Positions 3,607 through 23,987 are shown, numbered from the stretch's first letter. The stretch is 32,000 nucleotides of DNA from Wallemia ichthyophaga EXF-994 (GCF_000400465.1 NW_008806287.1:120001-152000); one strand, 5' to 3'. Translations and numbers: made by a program. Notes: generated by a model from the letters alone, not told the origin.

Positions 3607-3713
3607 AATCGGACGCTGTCTTGCTTATGACTTCAAATCCTCGAACTTGAATGTTTGGTTTTAAGAATGTTTCATAAATTATTATCCTCTATTAATTTTA
3701 CATTTACTCTCAT

Positions 3714-5576
3714 CTACCTTTTTCCTTTCGAAACCTTTATTTTACGCTTCTTTTCAGATTTCGGTATCTTAGTCTTACGCTTTTCACGCTTTTCATCCTT
3801 CATTGCTTGCTTACGCTCCTTCTTTGTATCTTTGTCCTCATGTTTCTTGCCTCTAGGTGCTCTCTCCTTCCATTCACCCTTGTCTCCATCTTCGCTATCA
3901 CTCTCACTATCACTACCTTCATCTTCACTACTCATATCACTTGTATTATCATGATTTATCTTATCATCTTCATCATTACTGCTCTCAATGTTCTCGGCTG
4001 GACGCTCATTCGCTTCAGTTACACCAGTCGTTGTTCCATATATCAGATCAGCTCCTTCACCACGCCTTATCTTCTCAGCATCACGCTCAGGGTCAATGAC
4101 CTGGTCTAAAGTTCTTGGTATGTAAGATTGAAGGAATACTGCATCATCTTGCTTAATTTTTTCGTCTTCCTTGCCATTTTGATCGAAATCTTTGATTGCT
4201 CTTTCGATCCAAATCTGTAATTCTTGGTAGAGAACTTGGTCTTCTTCAACTTGGCCGATACTAGGACGCTCTCCCCAAGTGGGATTCTTTTCAAGACTTT
4301 CACGAGTGACGTATTCGAAGCTGTCCCTCAGTGATAGTGTCTCGACACCACGTTTTGAGAAAAAGTTCTCAATATTTCGCAAGTCTGAACGCAGAAAGTC
4401 GAATGCAGCAGGATGCTCTTGCTCAACTGATTGAGAGACATCAATTATATATAGTTGTGAATTATGATATCTGTGTTCGACGTCAGTTGAGTCAGTTGAA
4501 TCCTATAGTGATTGAAGACAACTTACAGAATATTGTATTCAGATAAGTCAGCATGTACAAGCCTGCAAGCTCTGTACATTTTCCTTACATTGACCATGAG
4601 CTGAGCATAAAGTTTTGGCAATTTAGATGAGGCGATTTGAGCATCTTTGAGTCTTGGTGAAGCCCATCCATCTTCTGTACCAAAGAACTCCATAATTAAA
4701 ACGTTTTCCCTGACTTCTATTGGTTGAGGACATGGCAAACCTTGATCCCAAAGTCGTTTGAGGTTCCTCATTTCCTTTTCTGCCCATAATCTCACCATCT
4801 TACGAGGGTTACTTTTGGCATAGCCTTTCCTGAATCTAAATTCTCCGCTGACATAACGATCACGGTCTTTAAAGACCAAAATAGAAGTTTTGTAGATCTT
4901 GATTGCCAATTGTATACCTTGACGATCTCTTTGCAGAGAGGGAGCAGAGCCATGATAGACATTTGCCTTTAGAGGTAGTCAGTTGGTGTATACGAGCGAG
5001 AAGGAAAAAGCACCTCTTTACCAGTGCTCAAGCAACCATTGATCTCAGATACGACACCGCGGTTGATCATTTTCAAAAGAATAAGACGAGTTCTTGGATC
5101 GAGTACTTGCTCAGTTGTAGCTCTATCGCTTTTGTCCTTCTCTTTAGATTTCTCTTTGGTGTACGGTGCCAGATTGATCTGCTGAGAGAACCTGGAGTTG
5201 AGAGAAGAGAGTTGATCTGGATGTGAGTGATCGTTGGATTGATCATTTGGAAGAGCGGCAGAATCATCACCGCCATCAGTCTTCTTTAGTGTAGACTTTG
5301 ATTTAGCGTGTGACTGCTTGATATGAAGTACTTGATTCTTTAGCTTGTTATATTGCTTGGTAAAGTCTGCGATTTGATTCATATCGTTTCATTCTTTTGC
5401 TTTAAAAACTTACCACCGCCTGCACCTTCCCAGTCCTGGTTGTCGATAATATCCGCGCTATCGTCAAACTCATCCAATGAATCGTCAGATCTATCCGATA
5501 ACTCATGACTGGAATCATCGATGTAAGTCACAGATTCTTCTCTCTCTGTTTCGTATGTACGTTCTCGTGAACCCAT
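3714..5576 (-). CDS. RIO1: Atypical Ser/Thr kinase Rio1 (40S maturation)
   Basis: Spliced ORFs contain GCLSTGKE|[40 protein letters not shown] and [12 protein letters not shown]. The C-terminus is acidic then Lys-rich ([16 protein letters not shown]). Confidence 0.95.
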
Positions 5577-5618
5577 AAGGCGATGATGGTTGATAAGACG
5601 TTGTAAATTTAAACAAAA

Positions 5619-6644
5619 CTAGTGGATATATTTTCTATATAAGTATCTGCTTAAATGGTATCTACGATGACTGTATTCGATCATAAACAAAATGGTGACC
5701 AAGCTAATTGCTGTCATCATTTTCTTGGCTGTGAATACTTTGGCCATCTTCTTAAGCAGCTCCATAAGCTTACTTGACTGGTCCTGGCGACTGTTTATTT
5801 TGCTCAAAGACTCTAAAACCCTTTCAATTTTGGCTTCAATCGCCTCTAAACGTACTTGAACGGCGGTGAAATCTTCAACATGAACATTATCACTGTCTTC
5901 TGATTTAGGCGTAACTTCAGCAACGCTGCTTGAAGGTAGAATTGCTCCTCGTATACGCTTGTTCGTATACTTGCTCAGGCTATGTGAATAAGTTTGAGGC
6001 AACGATCTTGTTGAGTCCCAAGCCAATTCCATGTCATTGCCTTGCTTTAACTTGCCTTGTGGAATTGGATCAGACTCTGTCACGGATGGAGGAACGATGA
6101 GGCGCAATGATGGATTATCAGCTGAGCCTGATGAATCTGAACTGGTTTCTGAGACTGCTATTGCTAATTTATTAGAGCTTTAGATGAAAACTTACTCCCC
6201 GCTTACATCGATCGTCATCTGTGATAGGCTGACGCAATTTAAGAAGTAATTCGACACCTGTTGCTTTATCGCTGTGCCTTTTGAGAATCTGATTTCGCAT
6301 TAGCTGTGCTGATGTAAAGCCTACCTCCCTCACTTTCTTCAAAGTCTCATTGTACAAGTACTTGGCTTCAGATGAACTAAGTTCCTTCTGTGTTGACCAT
6401 GCGTCCCACTTTGCCCTTTCGAGCATGTTAAATATACTTGGTCTACTGCCATTGACGTTACCCTCTGTTGCTGCAAAATAAGCGTTAACTCGTTCATAAA
6501 GAACTTCGTTTGCCAACCTTGCTTGAAGAGGCTGTACATGTTGAGCTTCTCTTCGTAATTTGTCTGTATAGGACCATCCCTCGGTAATTCTTGCACGATT
6601 CCAACCGCTCTGTCGAATTGTAAATCAATTCCGCCTAACGCCAT
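5619..6644 (-). CDS. Acyl-CoA-binding-domain protein with C-terminal coiled coil and transmembrane segment (ACBD4/5, Atg37-like architecture)
   Basis: MALGGIDLQFDRAVGIVQELP...KLNMYSLFKQ|ATEGNV...RAKWDAW is an ACBP domain. Three introns lead into ORF 5619-6107, which has VRLEAIEAKIERVLESL (coiled coil) and MMTAISLVTILFMI (hydrophobic tail). Confidence 0.85.
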
Positions 6645-6736
6645 TGTGGTGATCAAGATAGCACTCACGAGCACGCAGGCTTTAAACTGAAATATAATAA
6701 ATACATCCGTTTCAATAAATATTTTCAATAATATCA

Positions 6737-8536
6737 TTACATGGTTAACGCTGGGCATCCCATTATCTGCGTGCCAGGCTTCAGTCGGGTCAGCTAATGC
6801 AAATCATGTCAAAGGCAACTTACCTTTCGTGTACAGTCTTTAGTTACTAACAAGCAGCCAAAGCAAGTTATTTTTATTAACTCCGGACAAGTTTCAACAA
6901 ACTCCTTCATTACGGAGTCATCTGTCTGTCTGCACCAACTAATATCAACCTCTCTGATCTTTGGAATCATTGAAGGTATTTTTAGAAGGAAATCTTTTGA
7001 GATATCCTTTAACTTATTTAGATTCAACAATTCGATCGTTGGTCCAATCTTGTTCAAAATCGTCTCTAGACATTTGTCGTTGATGACATGATTCAATGAT
7101 ATGTCCAATTGCTTTAACCCGATATTGTTCCATTGCTTGAATAGGTCCTCGAAGCCAGAATTATCGATCAAGTCGCAACTATTCAGATTAAGAATCCGCA
7201 GATTCGGACAGTATAATCTGATGCCATTGGTAAGTAGCCCATTGTCCAAGTCAGAATTTTTAGACAAGTTGAGCTCTTCAAGACATTGACCAACATTGGA
7301 AAGTAAATTGACAATGGCCTCCGATGTGACATTACCCTCAACTTGGACAATTTCTAAATTTTTAAGATTTTTCAATCCATTTAAGTGATCAACACCCTGA
7401 TTTTCCATCTTGATTTGAGATATACTAAGTACATTGAGCTTTTTGCAATTCCTTCCAACTGCTTCTACACTGCTTTGATCAAAGTGTGGACATTCAGAAA
7501 TTCTGAGCGATTGTAAAGAGCTGCCAATAGTATTTAGGAATTCGATCCATCCATCTGACTTAACGAGGTAGGCACCATGAACATCTAAGTGTTGTAAATT
7601 TCTAAACCTTAAACACCAATCTTTGATAACGTCGTTATTTAATTGACCAGCAAAAGCTATTTTTAACCGAGAGATACTTGGACAGAGAGTTGCTATAGAT
7701 TTTAGACATTCAGGATTAAGGTTCGCAGCATCGTAAAGAGACAGTGTGTCTTGATGACTGCCAAGAAATAGTTGAACCGTCTTGTAGTTAAGACTGCGAT
7801 TCTTTGATAGGACTTTTGCTATCGTATCTGTTGCATCACCGCCAATTTCACCGAGATTTTCGACGTAATCGATGTTAGCAATGATGACTTTAATAGAATA
7901 ATCGGCTAAGGATGATAAAGGTTTTGAAGATTCAACTTTAGGCGCAATTCTCTTTTCTTTTTGAGCAGGTTTTTTGGGCTTTGGTTTTGATTGAGCTTGC
8001 TTGAAGGGATCAATACCGTGGGCAGAGGTACACTTTGGACAGAGAACACCGATACCGTCTGGACCCGTTGGAGTATACTTTGTCTGTAAAACATTTAAAA
8101 GGGAAAAGACGTGAGAAGAAGAAAACTTACGATAATAACCTTTGATTGACATTCGATGCACGAAGTCTTACTGCCGACGCCACCAGCTGAAGAGCTTTGA
8201 GACTTTGAAGGAGCAGTGTAAGGATCGTCTTGCTCAATTTGAGGATTAGACTTTTGACGCTTCAAAGAAGGCTGAATGGGATCGTCGTCAAGGTCTTCAG
8301 AGTCAGAGCGGTGATGTGGGATTGGTGAGCGAGAAGTGGTTGGTTGAGGTGGAGGATTCTGTTGAATTTCACGCTGTTGACGCCTATAAGGATCGCCAGT
8401 GGGGCCAGTAATGCCTTGTTCTAGAAAGCAATTGAGGAGGAAAGGAGAAAAGAAAAAGCCAAGACGAACCTCTCAAAAAAGAAGTCAAAGCTGAAGTAGG
8501 GCCTCTGACGTTGTTGTTGTTATTTCTTCTGCTCAT
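6737..8536 (-). CDS. RAD7: Nucleotide excision repair LRR protein Rad7
   Basis: The N-terminus is MSRRNNNNNVRGPTSALTSFLR, the Rad7 signature. A CxxC...CxxC motif and an RNI-like LRR array follow (ORF 6809-8161). A final intron leads to PGTQIMGCPALTM-stop at 6737. Confidence 0.9.
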
Positions 8537-8579: not shown

Positions 8580-9604
<1,025 letters not shown>

Positions 9605-9840: not shown

Positions 9841-12496
9841 GCCCAAAAACTTCCGACTTGAATTTATTTCTAACGACTTTTTAAACTCTCCAGATAAATT
9901 GAAAAGCTTGATCATGACGTGCGCGTATCTAATCATGACATTTTGGCACAAGGATTTGCGAAAGTCTTGGAGCGACTAGGATCTACGTTGATAATTTAAA
10001 GATAGCTGCAGAAAGGTTAAATATACTGTTGATATCGAATAATTTAAACATGCTTCTCCGATAATGCAAAGTTGATCGGCAGTGTCCTAAGCTAATAATA
10101 TCACGTAAATCAATAAGAGAGCTAGTTTGAGCGCACAAAAAATGTATTATACGAGGACTATGACTAGAAACACAATATTACTGAACAAACACTTTTCTTA
10201 AGTGTTTGTTATAGAGAGTTACAATCAATTCGAGTTATGAACTCACATGGACCATTAACTAGCGACTACGTGAGAGAAGGCAACCGGTGATCTATATTTT
10301 ATGAAACACTAGATCGACACAGCGATCTTGAAATTTTGACGCAATGCTTGGCATTTCCACTCCGCTAATAAGAAGAAGTCATCGAGATTACTCAGGTAAT
10401 TTTTCATTAGGAATCGCATAACTTTGGTAAATCTTCATAAACTTGAAACTTCGAAGAACTTTGTGATTTCTATTTTTAAACTAGGCGATTCCAAATACGT
10501 GTAAATTCCTCAAAGAAAAGCTAAGTAATTCCAGAAAGTAAAACATTGACATCTAATACTAGATCAAAAATTTACGCAGACATAAAATATCTCAAGCTTA
10601 TTTCCGTAAAATTTCAAGTAATGAAGTATAATCCGCTTTCTTTTTTTGTCGAATTGTCACTAATAGATTAGTGTTTGCAACTTGTTTAAATGTATCTTAA
10701 AAACAACTGTTTAGAAATTGTTTAGAGATAGCTTGGTAGATGCTATATTTCTCTGTAACCTTAATGATTGTATTCGTACTATCTGTTAATTTGTTGTACA
10801 AGCCATTCCTCAACCCAGCAGCCAGACACTTATAACATCTGTTTAATTGTTCATTGAAGATGAAAGTATTTGACTGTAAAATATATTATCGACAAAAATT
10901 TAAGAGATTATAAGAATTTTTGGTGGGTGCTAAGGTAGGGGAAAGTATGATAAAAGAAAGTACAACTGCATTTAGACTGTATTCTCACTAATCATCAATC
11001 TAATACCACTCCTCAATAAGGGATCGACCGGAAGACCCCGAGGTATTGAACGCACCAGTGTGCTTAACCGAAAACAGGGTAAACCAAAAATGGACCAGAT
11101 TAGCAATACATTCGACCCAATTTATACTCTCAAATCAAGCATTATCAGTAAAAATTACAATCAGACAACACCTACTAACCATAATGTATGTATGAAGTTA
11201 GGTTAAACTGTTAAGCAGCCAGAATAGAAAGTTCTTAAAACACTTTAAACTTTAAAAATACTGGTAAACGTTCTAATCAGAACCGCAACACCCCCACTAT
11301 TCATATTATTAAAAAATGCGTGCATTAATTAAAGGTACAATAGTAGTAGCGTTAAGAGTTACACCATTTGGAAAACGTTTGGTTCCTTTGTGTTCTAGAA
11401 ATGTTGAATTTGGAGTGAAAGTGAGGTGCTTGATGAGGTGCAATTTGACGTATTAGTGCCATCGCAGGTACAATTCAGGCTGTAGTTTCATATATCTTCA
11501 TGCGAGAAGACGATGTAAAGTCCGCATTTGACCATCTTACTGTCTCTTCCTAGTATTAACGTCCTAATATGCGGCGTGTATGATATGTCTTCGTCAGAAG
11601 AAGTAAGAACTTTTTGAAGAAAATGATTGTCAACCAATATCTGTCAAATTTCCTATGTTTGTCGATTGAGGTTATTCTGTAATTATCTAGAATAAACTGT
11701 TAACCGGATTAAACCTTACTTTGAAGTATTTAGCAGTTTTCTTATCTTTGCAACAAAAGCTCTAACTCTGAAATCCCTAAAATTACTTCATTAAAGATTA
11801 GCTGGGTGGAAAGACAGGCCATGCTCCCGAACTAATGACGCATGTTGTGGACAGTTTAAGGTTCAGATTTGTTACTGGGGTATGAATGTCTGTGCAATAC
11901 TGAAATGTAGGAGAAAAACAGGATGCTTTCAGACAAAATAAATTGGATCTAGGCCGTCCTATGGTACTCAGGGAAGTGAGTCTTGAAAGTTTATCCGTCA
12001 AGGCAGCCGGAAAGAAATGATAGAAGGATATAAGGCGATAATGGGAAAGCTAGAAACTTTGTAATGAATAAAATCGCGTAGCAATTATTTTGATTTTTCA
12101 ACTGAGATAAAACGTAGTCGACCAAAAGACATCATCTATCAATTAAAGAATTAGGCTAATAAAAACATCCCGCGCAGTCGACAAGCCCGCTCGGTGTACA
12201 CAAGAAGTTCAGAAACACTTACTTTACAGCGGAAATACACTAGTCCGACCAAAGCGTGGTTGAAAGTAATAAAATTGAGACGTCAGAGAAATAAGAGCAG
12301 GACAAGAACATCTCTGATTGAAGTTCCTGCCATCCCAACGAAGATAGGTCAATGCAGTAAATTTAAAGCAATAATCAATGGTCCAGCCCAGGAGTCATGC
12401 CTTACACAAGTTTATATCAAAGAAGCAGAAAAAACTCAATGAGCAAATTGATCTGAATGAGGACACTTCCAAGCCCTAAGCTTTCATCTGATAGCA
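9841..12496. repeat. Left arm of a 2,656-bp near-perfect inverted repeat
   Basis: Position i pairs with 26301-i along the whole arm. Comparing all lines against the reverse complement of 13805-16460 gave only two mismatches (11934/14367 and 12488/13813) and no indels. Confidence 0.99.
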
Positions 12497-13804
12497 AAAA
12501 AAGTTATAGCACGGAAATAATGAAAATTCGTGGCCGTCCAAAAAGAATATTATAAAACGAAATGCTTAAAAAAAAAAACAAAAGTATCGCTAATGGCATT
12601 ATGATTTAGCTGTTTAATCAGTAATACAAAGTTTCTTCCCAAAAATTGGAACCGAATCTTAGCTTAGAATAAGTAAAAGCCCAAGTACTCTTTGTTTCTC
12701 AGTATTTTAAAACTCAACCCAAGCCAAGCTAATGAAGGACTACATCATCCTAAGGCAGATACGCTGTTAAAGACTTTAGACTCTTTTTATAAACACGCTT
12801 TTTATTTTCGGAGAACGAGAAAGTCCTTTTTCAATTTAAATTTAAATGTCCGCTGATTTTAAAAAGTTGGCCAAAATTATATATACATTATCTGTCTTCT
12901 GTTAGTCTTTGAAAAGAAAATACTTTCGGGAAAAGTGTTACCCACGCTAAATTCAACGGTCAGATTGTAAAAATACGACCTTTCTATTACTTTGAAATAA
13001 TGCTCACCCAAACTTAACTATGTCAAAAATCGCAATATCCTACATAAATTGATATGAACATGAATTTTGAATGAAGGAAATTGCTAAAGTTACTTCTAAG
13101 TTAGAGATTTAAGATTGAGGAACTTTATTGGCTTCGGAGAGCATAGTAAATTGGGAAAACCCGGCAAAGTGACAAAAATTAGGTTTCACTGAAAAATTAT
13201 CAAAGTAAGCTTTGACCAAATTGACATAGTGAATAGACTGTTACGGGCTTGCCAATCGTAGATCTAACCTGTTTGACAGTTTTTCTCAGAAGTTAAGGTT
13301 TGGGTCATTGAAGTTGCCTGTTTAGTTTTGATAAGAATTAAAGTTTCGACATCTAGTCTATGAACACTATGATCAGGAATATAAAAGGCGTAGCTACCCC
13401 AATTGTAAGGAATACCATGCATTTCAGCTAGATATGTTCAATATCGATCGATTCACGCGTTTGAAAGATTTTTTAATTTTTTGTCTTTTTCCTTCGAGCT
13501 TGGTAACACGGTTGATTCCAATTTATTTAAAGACCTATCATAAAAAGACAACTATGTTGACAGTACAGGTTCATTACGACTTGAGCGCATTATTACAAAT
13601 TCCATATCCTATTTTTTTACCGTATTGAAAGAATACTCGTTCGTATTCTTTGAAGCTCACAGCAAATACTATTATGAGATTGATTTCCTATGATTTAATT
13701 GTTGACAATCATCCAAATGTGGAGGAAGCTCAATGTTTACCTTAGATCAAATATGCGAAATGATGGTTAAATTTTAATCATAGATGGTTAAAATTATTTA
13801 CCCC
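12497..13804. other. Unique AT-rich non-coding spacer (central core) between the inverted arms
   Basis: 1,308 bp at about 32% GC (hand count 402 of 1,260 bases over 12541-13800). It has an A11 tract near 12568, T-runs and no credible ORF. Arm homology stops abruptly at both inner edges. Confidence 0.95.
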
Positions 13805-16460
13805 TGCTATCAAATGAAAGCTTAGGGCTTGGAAGTGTCCTCATTCAGATCAATTTGCTCATTGAGTTTTTTCTGCTTCTTTGATATAAACTTGTGTAAG
13901 GCATGACTCCTGGGCTGGACCATTGATTATTGCTTTAAATTTACTGCATTGACCTATCTTCGTTGGGATGGCAGGAACTTCAATCAGAGATGTTCTTGTC
14001 CTGCTCTTATTTCTCTGACGTCTCAATTTTATTACTTTCAACCACGCTTTGGTCGGACTAGTGTATTTCCGCTGTAAAGTAAGTGTTTCTGAACTTCTTG
14101 TGTACACCGAGCGGGCTTGTCGACTGCGCGGGATGTTTTTATTAGCCTAATTCTTTAATTGATAGATGATGTCTTTTGGTCGACTACGTTTTATCTCAGT
14201 TGAAAAATCAAAATAATTGCTACGCGATTTTATTCATTACAAAGTTTCTAGCTTTCCCATTATCGCCTTATATCCTTCTATCATTTCTTTCCGGCTGCCT
14301 TGACGGATAAACTTTCAAGACTCACTTCCCTGAGTACCATAGGACGGCCTAGATCCAATTTATTTTTTCTGAAAGCATCCTGTTTTTCTCCTACATTTCA
14401 GTATTGCACAGACATTCATACCCCAGTAACAAATCTGAACCTTAAACTGTCCACAACATGCGTCATTAGTTCGGGAGCATGGCCTGTCTTTCCACCCAGC
14501 TAATCTTTAATGAAGTAATTTTAGGGATTTCAGAGTTAGAGCTTTTGTTGCAAAGATAAGAAAACTGCTAAATACTTCAAAGTAAGGTTTAATCCGGTTA
14601 ACAGTTTATTCTAGATAATTACAGAATAACCTCAATCGACAAACATAGGAAATTTGACAGATATTGGTTGACAATCATTTTCTTCAAAAAGTTCTTACTT
14701 CTTCTGACGAAGACATATCATACACGCCGCATATTAGGACGTTAATACTAGGAAGAGACAGTAAGATGGTCAAATGCGGACTTTACATCGTCTTCTCGCA
14801 TGAAGATATATGAAACTACAGCCTGAATTGTACCTGCGATGGCACTAATACGTCAAATTGCACCTCATCAAGCACCTCACTTTCACTCCAAATTCAACAT
14901 TTCTAGAACACAAAGGAACCAAACGTTTTCCAAATGGTGTAACTCTTAACGCTACTACTATTGTACCTTTAATTAATGCACGCATTTTTTAATAATATGA
15001 ATAGTGGGGGTGTTGCGGTTCTGATTAGAACGTTTACCAGTATTTTTAAAGTTTAAAGTGTTTTAAGAACTTTCTATTCTGGCTGCTTAACAGTTTAACC
15101 TAACTTCATACATACATTATGGTTAGTAGGTGTTGTCTGATTGTAATTTTTACTGATAATGCTTGATTTGAGAGTATAAATTGGGTCGAATGTATTGCTA
15201 ATCTGGTCCATTTTTGGTTTACCCTGTTTTCGGTTAAGCACACTGGTGCGTTCAATACCTCGGGGTCTTCCGGTCGATCCCTTATTGAGGAGTGGTATTA
15301 GATTGATGATTAGTGAGAATACAGTCTAAATGCAGTTGTACTTTCTTTTATCATACTTTCCCCTACCTTAGCACCCACCAAAAATTCTTATAATCTCTTA
15401 AATTTTTGTCGATAATATATTTTACAGTCAAATACTTTCATCTTCAATGAACAATTAAACAGATGTTATAAGTGTCTGGCTGCTGGGTTGAGGAATGGCT
15501 TGTACAACAAATTAACAGATAGTACGAATACAATCATTAAGGTTACAGAGAAATATAGCATCTACCAAGCTATCTCTAAACAATTTCTAAACAGTTGTTT
15601 TTAAGATACATTTAAACAAGTTGCAAACACTAATCTATTAGTGACAATTCGACAAAAAAAGAAAGCGGATTATACTTCATTACTTGAAATTTTACGGAAA
15701 TAAGCTTGAGATATTTTATGTCTGCGTAAATTTTTGATCTAGTATTAGATGTCAATGTTTTACTTTCTGGAATTACTTAGCTTTTCTTTGAGGAATTTAC
15801 ACGTATTTGGAATCGCCTAGTTTAAAAATAGAAATCACAAAGTTCTTCGAAGTTTCAAGTTTATGAAGATTTACCAAAGTTATGCGATTCCTAATGAAAA
15901 ATTACCTGAGTAATCTCGATGACTTCTTCTTATTAGCGGAGTGGAAATGCCAAGCATTGCGTCAAAATTTCAAGATCGCTGTGTCGATCTAGTGTTTCAT
16001 AAAATATAGATCACCGGTTGCCTTCTCTCACGTAGTCGCTAGTTAATGGTCCATGTGAGTTCATAACTCGAATTGATTGTAACTCTCTATAACAAACACT
16101 TAAGAAAAGTGTTTGTTCAGTAATATTGTGTTTCTAGTCATAGTCCTCGTATAATACATTTTTTGTGCGCTCAAACTAGCTCTCTTATTGATTTACGTGA
16201 TATTATTAGCTTAGGACACTGCCGATCAACTTTGCATTATCGGAGAAGCATGTTTAAATTATTCGATATCAACAGTATATTTAACCTTTCTGCAGCTATC
16301 TTTAAATTATCAACGTAGATCCTAGTCGCTCCAAGACTTTCGCAAATCCTTGTGCCAAAATGTCATGATTAGATACGCGCACGTCATGATCAAGCTTTTC
16401 AATTTATCTGGAGAGTTTAAAAAGTCGTTAGAAATAAATTCAAGTCGGAAGTTTTTGGGC
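13805..16460. repeat. Right arm of the 2,656-bp inverted repeat
   Basis: Reverse complement of 9841-12496. It ends ...CAAGTCGGAAGTTTTTGGGC, mirroring GCCCAAAAACTTCCGACTTG at 9841. Confidence 0.99.
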
Positions 16461-16685
16461 GGATATATATGATAATAATGCACTTTTATTTCTGTATATG
16501 TTTATCTACGTCAAACCAAGATAATGAACCTCATTAGGCGTTTAAGGATAAGCTCATCAGCGTCAGGCTGCCAGAGTTTATCACGGAAATGCAAAGGTTC
16601 AAGCAAATATCGAGACATTTTGACGAGGCACTTTACCAAATTTTTTTGGTACTTTTAACCCACTTTACGCCATACATTCGAGACC

Positions 16686-17458
16686 ATGTGGGAATTGATA
16701 AAGAGGCACACGAGAATAGACAATAAGCGTGCTTTCATTGATATTTCTAACAACATCAACTGGATAGTAGGAGGTCTGAAGCTAACCTACTTGATCGATT
16801 ATCCTTTATACGGCGTGGAAGAATTCTTGGCCGAATTACAACAAGTAGATCAGCATTTTATTCTAGAGATTAAAAAGCTTATCAATTTAGTTCGACGAGA
16901 GTCACTCTGATCTGAGGGTTCTCACTCTTGCAGGAAATAATCTCATCATCAACTTTAGGCACTTTCATAGGTGTCTGCAGACCGAAAACTATGTCTTCGT
17001 AAGTCAACAGGCTCTAAAGTGTGGTTCTAACTGTATTCCAGGCTGAATATACTCCGCTAAAAGTCCTGGAAGCTCTCGATTGGTTATCTGATCAATTCAA
17101 AAGAAAGAAAATGATTTCCATTGAAAACCTAAAAGTTGAAACTAGCATTGCATTAGTTGGAGTATTGCTAGAATACGTAACGCCATACTCCACTTTGAGT
17201 GACGGTGGAAATTTCAAGCTGTACCAGTACAAGCTCAAGTCAAACCATGATGGCTTGGTTGAAGACATGATATCATCATTCACATGTCCAATGGCTTTAT
17301 TTCAGGTCAAGGACTTTGACGTAAAAGAAAGAGTTGATCAGCTACTTCATAGATTCCGTGACAGATTAATTTCAGCTCAAGAGAACAAATTATGTTTGAA
17401 ATATACTCATGTAGATTTAAGCGTTGAAGATATTTACATGAATAAATTAAATCTATGA
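16686..17458 (+). CDS. Conserved hypothetical protein, UPF0739/C1orf74 (DUF4504)-like
   Basis: A three-exon model gives one continuous frame: ...LAELQQ|FDESHSDLRVLTLAGNNLIINF...NYVF|AEYTPLKV.... The motifs GGLKLTYLIDY, IALVGVLLEYVTPY and ISSFTCP resemble this family, recognised from memory. Confidence 0.6.
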
Positions 17459-17471
17459 ATGCGCATCAATT

Positions 17472-20400
17472 TTATAAACTTTCAGAGTCCAGGGGAGACC
17501 TCAGCACCATCCTGACTTTACCTCTTTGGGTGTTCCTATCGTTTTCAACAAAAATCTCTACGTCTACCAAATCGAAAAGACTGATGGTGTGTGATTTGGA
17601 TTGAGAATCCTCAACTACGATCTTGTATTCTTCGGCTATAAAATTAATAGCCTTTTTGAATGTAATAATACCTTCCAGGCCCAAATTGGGTACATAAACC
17701 GCTAAACCATTCCTAAAAGTTCTGATTACATGTGCTTTTTCTCTGACACATTCGCCTTTACGATCATTACGAGCTTTAATTGCAAGTGCAACGTAGAATT
17801 CGATTGATGCTCTGCCAGCTTGTTGACCAAGACGATGTCTTTTATTAATGTTTTCCATAATACCTTCAACGAAAGACTTATTGTGCAGAGAACCATGTAA
17901 AGGTGTATGATTGATCGCAGACGCCAATTGACGATGAGCCAAAACGTCGGCGTATCTTCTAATAGGACTCGTGAAATGAGTATAAATCGGAGCAGCTAAA
18001 CCATAGTGTGAAAATGTTTCTTTACTATGACTACCACTACAGAAATACTCGGCAGATAACATACAGCGTGTTGCCATAATTCTGACTAGAGTGTTAAATG
18101 ACTTTTCATCTTTATCAATGCAATTATCTAATGATCTAGCTAATGCACCTGAGGATGAAACATCTAAATTAATACCTTTTCTTTTTGATAGTATGTCCTG
18201 CAAAGCTTCAAAGTTTTGCTTCGGTGGGGGAAGGTGTCGTCTGAAAGGAGTTAATGGGTAATAAATTAAGTGGACAAATCTGTAATTACCTTAGAACAGC
18301 AGTACCAGGAAACGTTTCATTAATCTTTGCAGCTACACTGCAATTAGCCAACAGCATGAATTCTTCGACAAGTTTGTTGGTTTCTTTGACTTGTTTTTGT
18401 TCTACGTCTATTGGTTCAGAAGATTCAGAACTATCTAGATGAATTTTAACTTCAGGTGAAGCCAAATCAAGAGCACCTCTATCAATTCTTTGCTTTTTCA
18501 ACTTGATGGCGATATCGTTCAATAATCTAATTGAAACTGTGAGGGAATCATTCAAAGATTTATCATCTTTTCTTAATTGAGCTTCTTCATAAGTGAATGC
18601 TGCTTTTGAAGCAATTACTGATTTGTTAAATTTGACATTAACAATTTCAGCATTTTGGTTTAACTCCCATGTCACACTAAATGCCAATCTTTCGACGTTT
18701 GGACGTAAAGAGCATAAATTTGTACCGAGTAATGAAGGAAGCATGTCAATTCTCTTATCAACCAAGTAAACGGTTGTACCTCTTGATGCGGCTTCTAGAT
18801 CCATTGTATTATCAGGTTTGACGAAGTGTGAAACATCAGCAATATGGACACCCGCTTCAATATTACCATTTGGTAAGTATTTAGCATGTAAAGCGTCGTC
18901 AATGTCAGTACAACCTGCATTGAAAGAAAGTGTTAGAGAGATGAATGATTCTAAATAGTCTAAAGATTCACCTGGTGGATCAATTGAACAAACAATTTCG
19001 TCTCTTAAATCAACTCGATTTTTCCACACTGGGTCATTTGAATCTTTTGGAGGAACGACCCAAGATTCACCTTCCTTTGGTAAACAGTTGAGAATAGATT
19101 TGGAAAAAGATCTGTAAGGAACTTCATATTCTAGTAATAAACTTTCAATTTCAGCTTCTTTCGATTGAACTTTACCTAATGCTCTAATGAAATGACCTTG
19201 AGGATAACGTGATAATATTGACCATTGATCGATTGCAACCAAAATCTTTTGGTCGACTAAGTTTGCAGCTTGTCTAGTTCTTATTTTAATTTTTGGAATA
19301 CGACGATCTATAGGACTAACGAAAACGGATTGTTGAGATTGAACTGAAGAGTTATTCACGGTAGATTTGTCTAAATGACAGACATAAGATCTCCACTGAC
19401 GTTTTACTATTCCCACTACACGACCAGTTGGCTGAATATCTGAATGAAAGGAATTTGCTTGATCAATTGATGAATTGATCTGATCAGATTGTAGTTTAGA
19501 TTCAAATTCAACAGTAGTAGGATCTAAATCTTGATCAACGTCATCAAATTTCAAAGCATTATCGGGATCAATAATTTGATCAGCAGAAGCTTTCCATTGG
19601 GATTTTGGAAGAAGTTGAACGACGACTACATCATCTTGAACAGCTCTATTGATGGATTGTCTACCAATGAGTAGAACGGGTTTAGTAAATTTAGGAATTT
19701 TGACAGAACCTTCTAAATAGTTGAATGGATTAGCTTGAAATTGACCTTGAAAAAGATGTCCAGATTTGATACCAGCTTGTAAAGAAGAATGAGGAAAGTA
19801 ATCAGGATATAAAACGGAGTTTGAAGAAGAGGAGGTAGAAATTGAAGATTGAGTTGTAGAAAATAAATCGATTAATTGATCAGAATTTGGTAAAGCTTTG
19901 ACATAAGAGAGAATATCGGAAGCAATGATATTATCCTTTTTAGCTAGGTTTAAGTTTTCATTATCATTTGATAGTAAAATGACGTCTTTGTGTTGTAGAT
20001 AATTATTGTACCAAGCAGCAGCGATTCTGATAGATTGGTCATTTATATCGTTAGGGGAAGAGAAAGAAGAGTTCAAATTTGAAGTTTCTGAGAAGAACTC
20101 GTTGTAGAAGACGTAGAATCTATTATCATGATCATTGATGATGGATAACAATCTTGAATATAGAGGAAGAGACCGATGTTTAACTTCATTTAAAACAGTC
20201 TGTAAAATGATAACGTCTTTAAAGCCACCTAAATCCAACAAGTCTAGCTGAGATAACAATACGTTTGTATCAGGCAAAAGGTAATGAGGCTTATTGAAGA
20301 GGGAACTAGTAGTGATACCGGATTTAGATAGGATTGGGTTTTGACCAGGATTCAAATCATCGTCCAAGCTACCTGAAGGGATATCATCACGCAAGTATCT

Positions 20401-20520
20401 CTCCTGAGTAAATTTGATAATATTCCCCTTGTTAGATTTTTTAATATAAGATTTGTAATTAGCAGTGCTATTATGTAAAGGCCTTTTTAAAATTGAAATA
20501 TCAGATTTATTGAAGTTCAT
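17472..20520 (-). CDS. DIS3: Exosome catalytic subunit Dis3/Rrp44 (PIN, CSD, RNB and S1 domains)
   Basis: Starts MNFNKSDISILKRPL at ATG 20520, then ERYLRDDI and the PIN motif LPDTNVLL. The RNB motif is CSIDPPG|CTDIDDALH across intron 18915-18971. HIADVSHFV, RGTTVYLV and YTHFTSPIRRYAD follow. Confidence 0.97.
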
Positions 20521-20543
20521 TTCTTGGTTGGATAGAGTCAACG

Positions 20544-20870
20544 ATGCAGTTGACAGGAATTTTGAACAAGAGATCAGTATGGAAGGGTGAATAGGTGTTG
20601 AAATCGTTGATATTGTAATAACAGTTCATCATAGGTCCATTTTTCAAGTCATTTCCAAATTTAACTCAACTAAAGAAGGATAATCAATTGATAAAGACAA
20701 CAGCGAGGAATTGTACAATTCTACCAAACTTTGTTGGAATGAAATTTGGAGTTCATAATGGAAAGAATTATATACCAATACAAATAACAGAAGCAATGAT
20801 TGATTACAAGTTAGGATTCTTTGTACCAACGAGGAAGAAGTTTAGCTATCGATTAACTAAGAACAAGTAG
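20544..20870 (+). CDS. RSM19: Mitochondrial ribosomal protein uS19m
   Basis: [15 protein letters not shown]|PFFKSF...[49 protein letters not shown], with one intron. Confidence 0.93.
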
Positions 20871-21415
20871 TCTGGATAGCTCAAAGATCTATACTCTGAC
20901 TCAAACGTTTGTAATTTAATTTTATTTAGTAGATATTCGTCAATATTGCCTTCATATCCAGATTTCCTGACTAGAGATGTGATGGATTGAATTTTGTTCC
21001 AATTTTGATCAGTCAAAACGTTGGGAAGGTATACAGCGTTGTAGTTGATATGATCAACTAAGAAATTAATCTTAATGCCATGTTTACCGATAGTGAATTC
21101 ATTCCAATTCGATTGGGATGTAAAGTTGAACAAGACAGATATCGCGCAAGACAATCCAGGTAAAATAGAATAGTCTATAGGTTTAAACCTTTTATCTTTC
21201 AAAGCTGACAATAAGCTGTATTGTTTAATACCTTTTAATAGATTGAGTGAATTGAATGTACCCAAGCATCCTCTCAGCCTCTGATTGAAATTCCAGGTTA
21301 AGAAAATGGGGTAATTGATATGACAGTCTCCAAGATGAATAACTTGATGATTAACGTCGAAGTGATTGATTAGGGTATCAAATGCTAAGATTAGATGATT
21401 ATCATTTAATATCAT
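20846..21415 (-). CDS. AMMECR1-domain protein
   Basis: Motifs [41 protein letters not shown] and SLVRKSGY. The likely start is MILNDNHL at ATG 21415. The ORF track extends further upstream into the neighbouring gene. Confidence 0.9.
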
Positions 21416-21435
21416 TTCCTTTACATAAAACGACG

Positions 21436-23987
21436 ATGATGACTGAATTTGATGAAGTGATCGAGTTTCATAAAAGATATCAAACAACTCAATTGATTGG
21501 TTTAGATGATTTGAATCAGTCAAAAACTTTATTGAAGAGCATCATTATGAATTTGAATGATGATTATAATGATAAATTGGTGTATCTGATATCATCACAT
21601 TATTCACCGATACAAGAATACTTGATGAATAATCATCACTTAGAACTATTTAATCACTTTATCGATCATTCTATCTTGAATCACTTGATATCCACACTCT
21701 CAACTTCTTCATCTATCTTATCTTTAACTTACGTAATAAAATCAAACTCAAGCTTTGCAGTAAAATCAAAGTGCTCATCTTTGTTATCGTCCTTGATATT
21801 AAAGCCTGATGGCGTTTCTTCTTTATTAGTCATTCTATTAAACTCTCCTGATGATTTCAACAATCAAAAATTCATTCAAGTTGCTAAATTATTATCAACT
21901 AAGCCAAGTACTTTGGATATTGATGGCTATCTTTCTATTATAGTCAAAAACATACTACAAACTCTCCTCCTATCTCCTCCAATTAACCATCTAAAAGCAA
22001 TCGCACTCACTTTTGACTTCTTTCTATCAAAATATCAAGATAAGTTTATTCATCAATTAAATCTTAGCTTGATTAAACCTTTTCACACTCCAAATCAATC
22101 AACTCAGTTAACAAACGCCTTAACTCACTTAAACATTCTAATCCCTCACTCAAATATCATTTTGAACAAATTCACTACTCATTTATTTCCTTTATTATTC
22201 AATTTAGGTTGTCATTTGGACTCTTCAAAAACTGCTAACCCCTTATACAAATCTTTGATTGATAATATATTTAACAATTGGTCGTCACTCGTAGACAACG
22301 ACTTAGCTATTGATACTGTTTGGTACACTCTTAAATCTGGTACCGGTTGGCAAGATGATTCTTTCCAATGGTCCACATCCAACCCAGATGGTTTAGTCAT
22401 CACTCAACAATCATCTTCATCTTCACCAAATCCAAACTTGTTCAATATTCATCAATCTCAACAAAATGATTTACTAGAAATAGCACCAAATCCTCAATCT
22501 TTAGCAACTTTTGTCATTAACATTCATAGGAAGCAGATACTCAGTCCAATTCTCATCAAATGTCTCAGTCAATATCAAGGTTTAAAAGACTTTAATGATT
22601 TACAACCTCTACGTTTTAAAGACATTATGAAATACTTGCAATTCTCTACCTGTTTAGTTGAACAAATGGGTACTGACATTTTAGAAAACAAAGATGACAT
22701 CCTTGCTTTTATTTATCACACCCTACAAATTCAACAACAATCTTCCTCTCGAAAACCAAACGTTGAAAATACTACTAAAAGCTTACAAGACTTATTGGTG
22801 TTTGAAGATCATGTTCATAATAACACCGCAAACGACGAGGAGGATGTTGATAGCCTGAAGGAGGTTGATCAGATATTAATCTCAACTGCTTTGTCCCTCC
22901 TTTTAGCAACTTTAGAAGGTATGTTATTCAGTTATATATGTGTCAATAACAACTTACTCTCAAATAAGCCAACGAAAGTATACGAGTAGACAACGCTCCC
23001 CTGCTCGCATTAATCTCTGATCGCTTGGACATATTCATTGACGAGTTTCCTGCTATTTCACCTGTGGCACATGAGTGTAAATTGGTTTTATCAGCTAGGA
23101 ATGCTACATCATCAAAAATAGACGATATCATCAGTTGGTCTTACAAAAGGCAAAGAGAGATATTCAATTTATCTCTAAAAGACATTCAAGACTCACAGTT
23201 ACCTGTTAGAGCACATGGTTTAGATCAATTGAGAAAATTAGTGCAACACACTGTCTCAAAAAATGATGTAAACGCCAATAAAGATAACACGCTCGATCCT
23301 TCTTTAATTAGTAATATACTAGATGTTTTTATTCAAGCAATCAAGGCAGATGATAGCTATATCTACCTCAATGCTGTTAGAGGTTTAGTCGTAATGATGG
23401 ATAAGATTGGTCATGAAATACTAAGCCAATTGTCAATCAAGTACTCCGAGTACCATGAAAGCTTGACTGAAATTGAATTAGACCAAAGGTTAAGAATTGG
23501 TGAAGCGATCATACAAGTTATCAAGAACTTATCGGACGCTTTACCCTCATACTCTCACTTGATATTACCCCAATTAATAAAAGTAATGTCCCAAAATAAC
23601 CTACCAAGTTTGTTGAGAGCTTCGAGCTTAACTATTCTAAGTCAAGCTTGCATCACGTGCATACTGGCAGTTGAACCCTTCATCAATGAGATTTTAAACG
23701 GTATGGAAGACTTATTGATGATTGAATCTCTACAAAACTCAAAAGATTTGAGTAACCCTTTGGACAAAGATACCAATTTAGTTCAATTGAAGAGATCTGC
23801 TTTGATTCTAATAGCGATGATATTCAGATCACTTTATGATACTGCAAATATCACTGTACCTCTCGCATTGAAAAGCAGTTTAAGAACAAAGATCAACTAC
23901 ATCGCCCAATTTGATAATGACGAGTTAGTTCAACATCAAGCAACAGAGGTTCTAGAAGAATTCAACTGGAGCAATAGATTACCTTGA
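21436..23987 (+). CDS. RTP1: Armadillo/HEAT protein Rtp1/TANGO6 (RNA polymerase II assembly/import)
   Basis: ORFs 21382-22989 and 23025-23987 are joined by an intron near 22920-22990. C-terminal motifs are LPVRAHGLDQLRKLV, DDSYIYLNAVRGL and RLRIGEAIIQVI. Confidence 0.8.

Follow-up and report, generated by a model that had tools for sequence, protein, structure and literature searches.

Only a few ascomycete yeasts are known to have inverted-repeat centromeres, in which a unique core lies between two near-identical arms in opposite orientation. A 32-kb stretch of genomic DNA from the salt-loving basidiomycete Wallemia ichthyophaga EXF-994 (hereafter the window; all coordinates are counted from its start) contains a 6,620-bp palindrome of the same design, located between the genes YPT1 and DIS3. 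Wallemia is an early-diverging lineage of Agaricomycotina. The best reading of this element, circumstantial and to our judgement about evenly balanced between right and wrong, is that it is the inverted-repeat regional centromere of this W. ichthyophaga chromosome.

The closest described counterparts are the centromeres of Komagataella phaffii, in which inverted repeats 2.0-2.7 kb long enclose a mid region of ~1 kb and GC content is only slightly lowered (Coughlan et al. 2016, PMC5010909). Identical repeats longer than 1 kb are restricted in that genome to the four centromeres, the MAT inverted repeats, and the rDNA (PMC5010909). Candida tropicalis and Candida parapsilosis likewise have a unique mid core, which binds CENP-A, together with kilobase-scale inverted repeats and adjoining synteny breakpoints; the C. 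tropicalis cores span 2-10 kb, and their repeats are homogenised between chromosomes. In Schizosaccharomyces pombe, a central core (cnt) lies between inverted, chromosome-specific innermost repeats (imr), but the whole centromere is far larger (35-110 kb), with outer arrays, heterochromatin dependent on histone H3 lysine 9 methylation and RNA interference (H3K9me/RNAi), and tRNA boundary genes. Among basidiomycetes, Malassezia species have tiny, gene-dense genomes and intergenic centromeres of a few kilobases: a core of less than 1 kb, ~78% AT, with a 12-bp motif and no direct or inverted repeats (Sankaranarayanan et al. 2020, PMC7025860).

A near-perfect inverted repeat around a unique core

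The palindrome comprises three segments:

9841..12496, no strand: left inverted arm; 2,656 nt, 35.6% GC, non-coding
12497..13804, no strand: unique core between the arms; 1,308 nt, 32.3% GC, non-coding; orientation in the reference provisional
13805..16460, no strand: right arm; matches the left arm in reverse complement except for 2 mismatches, at the mirror positions of 11934 and 12488

A repeat search with a threshold of at least 40 nt returned a single repeat in the whole window: this inverted pair of 2,656-nt arms, with 1,308 nt between them. Compared base by base, the arms differ at two positions (window 11934 and 12488), an identity of 99.92%. Direct comparison places the limits of that identity exactly at the outer and inner ends, with no extension past any of them. 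An inverted repeat of such length is not attributable to chance. The locus thus presents the arrangement by which inverted-repeat centromeres are recognised, a unique core between two near-identical inverted arms. The original prediction, an earlier reading of the same DNA, had described two 2,656-bp arms, 99.9% identical and inverted around a 1,308-bp core; both coordinates and structure were reproduced.

The core is continuous and free of undetermined bases (N), and each inner arm end leads into one of its two ends. A true inverted repeat shows itself in an assembly graph in just this way, with both inner ends opening into one continuous, gene-free 1.3-kb core, and the two flanks are likely to be joined through one core in reality. 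The core is 67.7% AT, and GC content rises from core to arms to the window as a whole (37.3%).

A separate compositional feature concerns the inner arm ends (window 12001-12500 and its mirror, 13801-14300), which are strongly A-rich on the core-ward strand: AT skew there is +0.29, compared with ~0 elsewhere.

The likeness to K. phaffii centromeres, pointed out in the original prediction, extends to nearly equal dimensions (~6.5 kb in total; 2,656-nt arms and a 1,308-nt core, against 2.0-2.7 kb and ~1 kb), near-identical arms, non-coding content, and GC content little below that of the surroundings. Both elements lack a flanking heterochromatic repeat array and reside in compact (about 9.5 Mb), repeat-poor genomes. 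They differ in phylum (Basidiomycota, Wallemiomycetes, versus Saccharomycotina) and have no sequence similarity. Moreover, the K. phaffii elements have demonstrated Cse4 occupancy by chromatin immunoprecipitation sequencing (ChIP-seq), transcription coldspots, one copy per chromosome, and core-orientation polymorphism, whereas the Wallemia element is a candidate centromere. It shares with the S. pombe cnt/imr region the central core between inverted repeats, and has neither outer arrays nor tRNA genes.

Non-coding content without transposon hallmarks

Arms and core are non-coding. Each reading frame of arm plus core contains 74-117 stop codons per 1,321 codons, and the longest open frame in the element (97 aa) is of the length found in shuffled sequence (93.8 +/- 17.4). 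A six-frame Pfam search of arm plus core identified no domain (best E=0.22). All 35 open stretches of at least 38 aa, along with five from the W. mellicola equivalent, were compared with 5.8 billion proteins, yielding 0 matches at E<=1e-3. With the Pfam and protein searches both empty, a coding gene or transposon remnant was rejected as the identity of the element. Searches of the element also found no tRNA gene, no Rfam family, and nothing notable by way of tandem repeats; the arms are without subrepeats. The earlier claim that coding potential, tRNA, and transposase remnants are all absent is therefore upheld by the Pfam, protein, and tRNA searches.

The element is equally distinct from its surroundings. 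Comparisons by tblastn and sensitive blastn among arms, core, flanks, and the fetched Wallemia loci revealed no similarity for arms or core, aligning only a conserved spacer and open reading frame (ORF) beside DIS3. Derivation of arms or core from the flanking genes or from their W. mellicola neighbours was rejected on this basis. Copies of arm or core elsewhere, sought through the translated open stretches, gave no match, and metagenome scans with 24-mers taken from the arms of W. mellicola and W. ichthyophaga gave 0 matches. No target-site duplication is present at the junctions, which read …cgcatttt|gcccaaaaac… on the left and …gtttttgggc|ggatatatat… on the right.

Two further identities were considered and set aside. 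A head-to-head telomere fusion was rejected because telomere repeats occur nowhere in the 32-kb window and none is visible at the printed W. mellicola scaffold end. Flip-flop repeats of the mating-type kind (Ogataea/Komagataella) were rejected because arms and core are non-coding and the neighbours are YPT1, a 145-aa ORF, and DIS3.

A gene desert in a GC-poor domain

The features flanking the palindrome are as follows:

8580..9604, plus strand: YPT1, left flanking gene; 205 aa, 8 short introns; identical to EOQ99997.1
9605..9840, no strand: unique spacer from the YPT1 stop codon to the left arm; 236 nt, without a target-site duplication at the junction
16461..17020, no strand: unique spacer from the right arm to the 145-aa ORF; 560 nt, its distal part conserved in other Wallemia species
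17021..17458, plus strand: 145-aa ORF of the right flank; unannotated in EXF-994, no Pfam match
17472..20541, minus strand: DIS3/RRP44; EOQ99998.1

YPT1 and DIS3 carry consecutive accessions, so no annotated gene lies between them. The gap between these two annotated genes is 7,867 bp. Counted between the YPT1 stop (9604) and the 145-aa ORF, which starts at 17021, the gene-free gap is 7,416 bp; the original prediction was right about the gap, and gave its size as 7.1 kb. The palindrome accounts for 6,620 bp of these 7,416 bp, and the remaining spacers (236 and 560 nt) are of ordinary size. This is the sole large gene-free gap in the window, so that annotation, Pfam, protein, and open-frame evidence together delimit a gene-free region standing out from normal intergenic spacing, as is expected of a centromere.

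The whole window is GC-poor (37.3%, compared with a genome mean of 45.35%). GC content at third codon positions (GC3) of the coding sequences is 25-44%, lowest in DIS3 (25%), and the GC-poor domain therefore spans at least 32 kb. It may represent a low-recombination domain like those around centromeres.

Fixed boundaries in other strains

The window matches the EXF-994 reference assembly (GCA_000400465.1, 82 scaffolds): positions 7472-30520 correspond to KE007237.1 127472-150520, with 0 mismatches and 0 N. The DIS3 open frame (18286-20541) matches Wallemia ichthyophaga DIS3 at 100% identity, in agreement with the earlier assignment of the host to the basidiomycetes. The element lies at ~141.5-148.2 kb of the 333-kb scaffold KE007237.1, and so is internal to the scaffold. 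This reference was assembled by SOAPdenovo with K=21 from Illumina libraries of 500 bp and 2 kb (PMC3849046). Neither library bridges an arm of 2,656 nt, and the assembler therefore supplied both the arm-core-arm join and the orientation of the core.

Short-read assemblies of about 20 other W. ichthyophaga strains provide an independent view of the outer ends; the contigs examined were 10 of the 18 carrying YPT1 and, after similar loci had been collapsed, 4 of the 12 carrying DIS3. The ten YPT1-side contigs reach 119-124 nt into the left arm, ending at window 9959-9964. The four DIS3-side contigs end correspondingly at window 16337-16342, 119-124 nt inside the right arm, except for one that ends at 16457. 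Both sides were recovered from GCA_004918315.1, in which the final 119 nt, read from flank inward, are identical at the two ends. The same repeat thus adjoins both flanks, in inverted orientation, independently of the reference scaffold. Independent assemblies confirm that the outer boundaries are true repeat boundaries in inverted orientation, and these boundaries are unchanged in every strain examined. Among the assemblies examined, none besides the reference joins the YPT1 and DIS3 flanks. The W. ichthyophaga contigs from Logan end 16 and 49 nt short of the arm, in an AT-rich stretch, and do not resolve the boundary.

Strain variation within the arms bears on how their identity is maintained. 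A 2-bp CT deletion (AAACTCTCC -> AAACTCC) at arm positions ~49-50 (window ~9889-9890 and 16411-16412) was seen on the right in strain SPOC and on the left in SPOB and SPOG; the other strains lack it, as do SPNX and the reference in both of their arms. Its occurrence in left and right arms of different strains, none of which had both arms recovered, suggests arm homogenisation, although a dinucleotide slip could recur independently. Arm-arm divergence (0.075%) is lower than the mean density at which single-nucleotide polymorphisms (SNPs) separate strains from reference (0.32%). One further arm variant, an A-to-G SNP at arm position 5, was seen in the right arm of strain SPOP; both variants fall within the outermost 119 nt of the arm.

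A synteny break beside DIS3

Collinearity of the left flank extends through YPT1 in W. mellicola CBS 633.66; there, YPT1 is followed across 345 bp by a DWNN-domain gene, with no repeat and no DIS3. DIS3 and the collinear genes of the right flank occupy a separate scaffold, which ends 1,881 nt past DIS3; the printed sequence of this scaffold end contains no telomere repeat. The locus is thus a synteny break with respect to W. mellicola. The original prediction had proposed looking for an inverted repeat between YPT1 and DIS3 in sister species. That expectation fails in W. mellicola, where the two genes are not neighbours.

The other W. mellicola assemblies fetched (~10 of SPAdes type, one 106-kb megahit metagenome contig, and one Logan contig) end 1,030-1,225 nt past DIS3, in a k-dependent manner. 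From these contig ends, a putative repeat boundary can be placed ~1,000-1,020 nt beyond the DIS3 stop; the W. ichthyophaga value is 1,012 nt. Sequences past the boundary are unrelated in the two species. A repeat beside DIS3 in both species, with a changed partner flank, would match a translocation at a centromere edge, as in Malassezia and Candida. Breakpoints at or beside centromeres are well documented in both of those groups (PMC7025860).

Weighing the centromere reading

If the element is the centromere, its operation might resemble that in K. phaffii. CENP-A, CENP-C, and the KMN network are retained in basidiomycetes. CENP-A nucleosomes and the kinetochore would assemble on the ~1.3-kb unique core, flanked K. 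phaffii-style by the two 2.66-kb inverted arms, with CENP-A occupancy declining along the arms. Intrachromosomal gene conversion would keep the arms near-identical and could be ongoing, and occasional crossovers between arms would invert the core. As a palindromic, gene-free, and presumably untranscribed setting, the locus would favour both deposition and maintenance of CENP-A. Presumably, each chromosome would carry one such element. A broader proposal is that Wallemia centromeres in general are of the compact, K. phaffii-like inverted-repeat type, and that their position beside DIS3 has been kept since the split of W. ichthyophaga and W. mellicola while their sequence was fully turned over; we regard this as tentative, slightly short of an even call.

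Beyond anatomy, non-coding content, and gene-desert setting, circumstantial support comes from the constancy of the boundaries among strains, the deletion shared between left and right arms, the lack of a target-site duplication, the GC-poor domain, and the synteny break, with W. mellicola assemblies still ending at the matching point beside DIS3. Several observations weigh against a centromere. The core does not stand out as a sharp AT trough: over 300-bp windows, GC content falls to 28% at its lowest, and such windows occur in the arms and equally inside the RTP1/AMMECR1 genes near 21.4 kb, bearing out the caveat in the original prediction that the core is not the GC minimum of the window. 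No basidiomycete centromere of this design has been described, the known ones being either retroelement-rich (Cryptococcus) or short, AT-rich, and repeat-free (Malassezia); a literature search found no account of Wallemia centromeres, or of an inverted-repeat centromere in any basidiomycete. The continuity from flank through arm, core, and arm to flank in the reference depends on the assembler, given libraries shorter than the arm. The putative W. mellicola repeat beside DIS3 is placed by contig ends and not by any inverted or centromeric character. Finally, in SRR25399871 (Logan), the closest other species sampled (~81% nucleotide identity), contigs end near both boundaries with no inverted sequence in common, and are uninformative. 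The centromere inference of the original prediction therefore survives in its structural evidence, its non-coding content, and its size match to K. phaffii, and loses the support of a conserved YPT1-DIS3 inverted repeat, which is absent in W. mellicola.

A Malassezia-type short regional centromere defined by AT richness is not a suitable substitute. Wallemia and Malassezia are both basidiomycetes with tiny, gene-dense genomes, and both have synteny breakpoints at or beside the element. However, the Wallemia core is 67.7% AT, its 28% GC minimum is matched inside genes, and the inverted repeat is its defining feature; the Malassezia model was accordingly rejected.

The most substantial rival, which we nonetheless consider rather unlikely, is a palindrome of no centromeric role: an inverted duplication of intergenic DNA, perhaps made by fold-back repair at a YPT1/DIS3 rearrangement breakpoint and kept by gene conversion, with the centromere elsewhere. 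The synteny break against W. mellicola is what such an origin would predict, the near-identity of the arms fits a young duplication as well as it fits homogenisation, and neither the missing AT trough and motif nor the lack of basidiomycete precedent in the literature would require explanation. Yet arms and core resemble neither the flanks nor any gene, so they are not duplicated flank material, and a functionless insert of 6.6 kb would be out of the ordinary where 74% of the genome is coding. (The published W. ichthyophaga genome is 9.6 Mb, with 73.6% coding sequence, 1.67% repeats, and 45.35% GC.) Moreover, W. mellicola, in which DIS3 has a different partner flank, also appears to have a repeat at an equal distance from DIS3, which would indicate an old, retained feature instead of a by-product of one recent break.

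Mobility and misassembly carry less weight. A non-autonomous element with very long terminal inverted repeats, akin to foldback transposons, would have just this plan of long inverted arms around a short non-coding centre; alternatively, the arm could be a copy of a dispersed repeat family, at any member of which short-read contigs would break. The junctions, however, have no target-site duplication, the Pfam and protein searches recovered neither a transposase nor any other protein remnant, the tandem subrepeats that characterise foldback arms are missing, and the element occupies one site with constant boundaries in all strains examined, in a genome with just 1.67% repeats. We therefore consider a mobile element improbable. 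Still less credible is a scaffolding artefact, whereby YPT1 and DIS3 reside at separate loci, each adjoining a copy of one repeat, and were wrongly closed into a palindrome. SOAPdenovo at K=21 with inserts of 500 bp and 2 kb could have made such an error across a 2,656-nt arm, no other assembly links the two flanks, and in W. mellicola they are on different scaffolds. Against this, a single continuous, N-free, non-coding core of 1,308 nt meets both inner arm ends, so that a false join would require the seamless fusion of two unrelated gene-free continuations, and the inverted, identical outer ends are seen in an independent assembly.

Gene models around the locus

The 145-aa ORF of the right flank has a counterpart of the same size at the matching place in W. 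mellicola (L011, 12916-13323) and was called in the Logan W. ichthyophaga contigs. The label UPF0739, given to it by the original prediction, was not confirmed; the ORF is without a Pfam match. On the left, the eight YPT1 introns (44-63 nt each) fall within ~1 kb, and strain annotations carry a shorter model of 196 aa.

Other annotations near the palindrome appear to need revision. In the interval 20846-23987 (L010, 6534-10001), RTP1 is represented by a 423-aa model, and AMMECR1 is unannotated in both EXF-994 and the strain annotations; W. mellicola has RTP1 models of 810-825 aa and a separate AMMECR1. Since the RTP1 and AMMECR1 open frames are intact in the window (AMMECR1 Pfam E=7e-33), the W. 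ichthyophaga models look truncated or missing. The 2019 strain annotations (L013-L022, 5093-9957; window ~3700-8500) merge a Rhp7-like gene, ACBP, and RIO1 into single proteins of 1,391-1,402 aa. This fusion is probably an annotation merge, as W. mellicola CBS 633.66 has three separate genes, and it may be the reason why the Rhp7-like ORF matched no W. ichthyophaga protein. Finally, between AMMECR1 and DIS3, W. mellicola carries a gene of the ribosomal protein S19/S15 family (L009, 9651-9869; L006, 9633-9960); the corresponding interval in W. ichthyophaga (window 20542-20845) is only ~300 nt.

Implications

If the palindrome is indeed a centromere, it would take the inverted-repeat centromere beyond the Ascomycota for the first time, as a known architectural kind in a new phylum, of convergent origin, and not as a new kind of element. 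Such an independent origin, in a tiny and transposon-poor basidiomycete genome, would imply that inverted repeats may be a recurrent mark of centromeres where retroelement-rich pericentromeres are absent, and would extend the range of basidiomycete centromeres beyond the retroelement-rich and AT-rich types.

The locus also bears on the open question of whether a palindrome itself helps to specify CENP-A deposition. As the first centromere candidate in Wallemia, it would be of use for chromosome-level assembly, for studies of karyotype evolution, and for the construction of stable plasmids.

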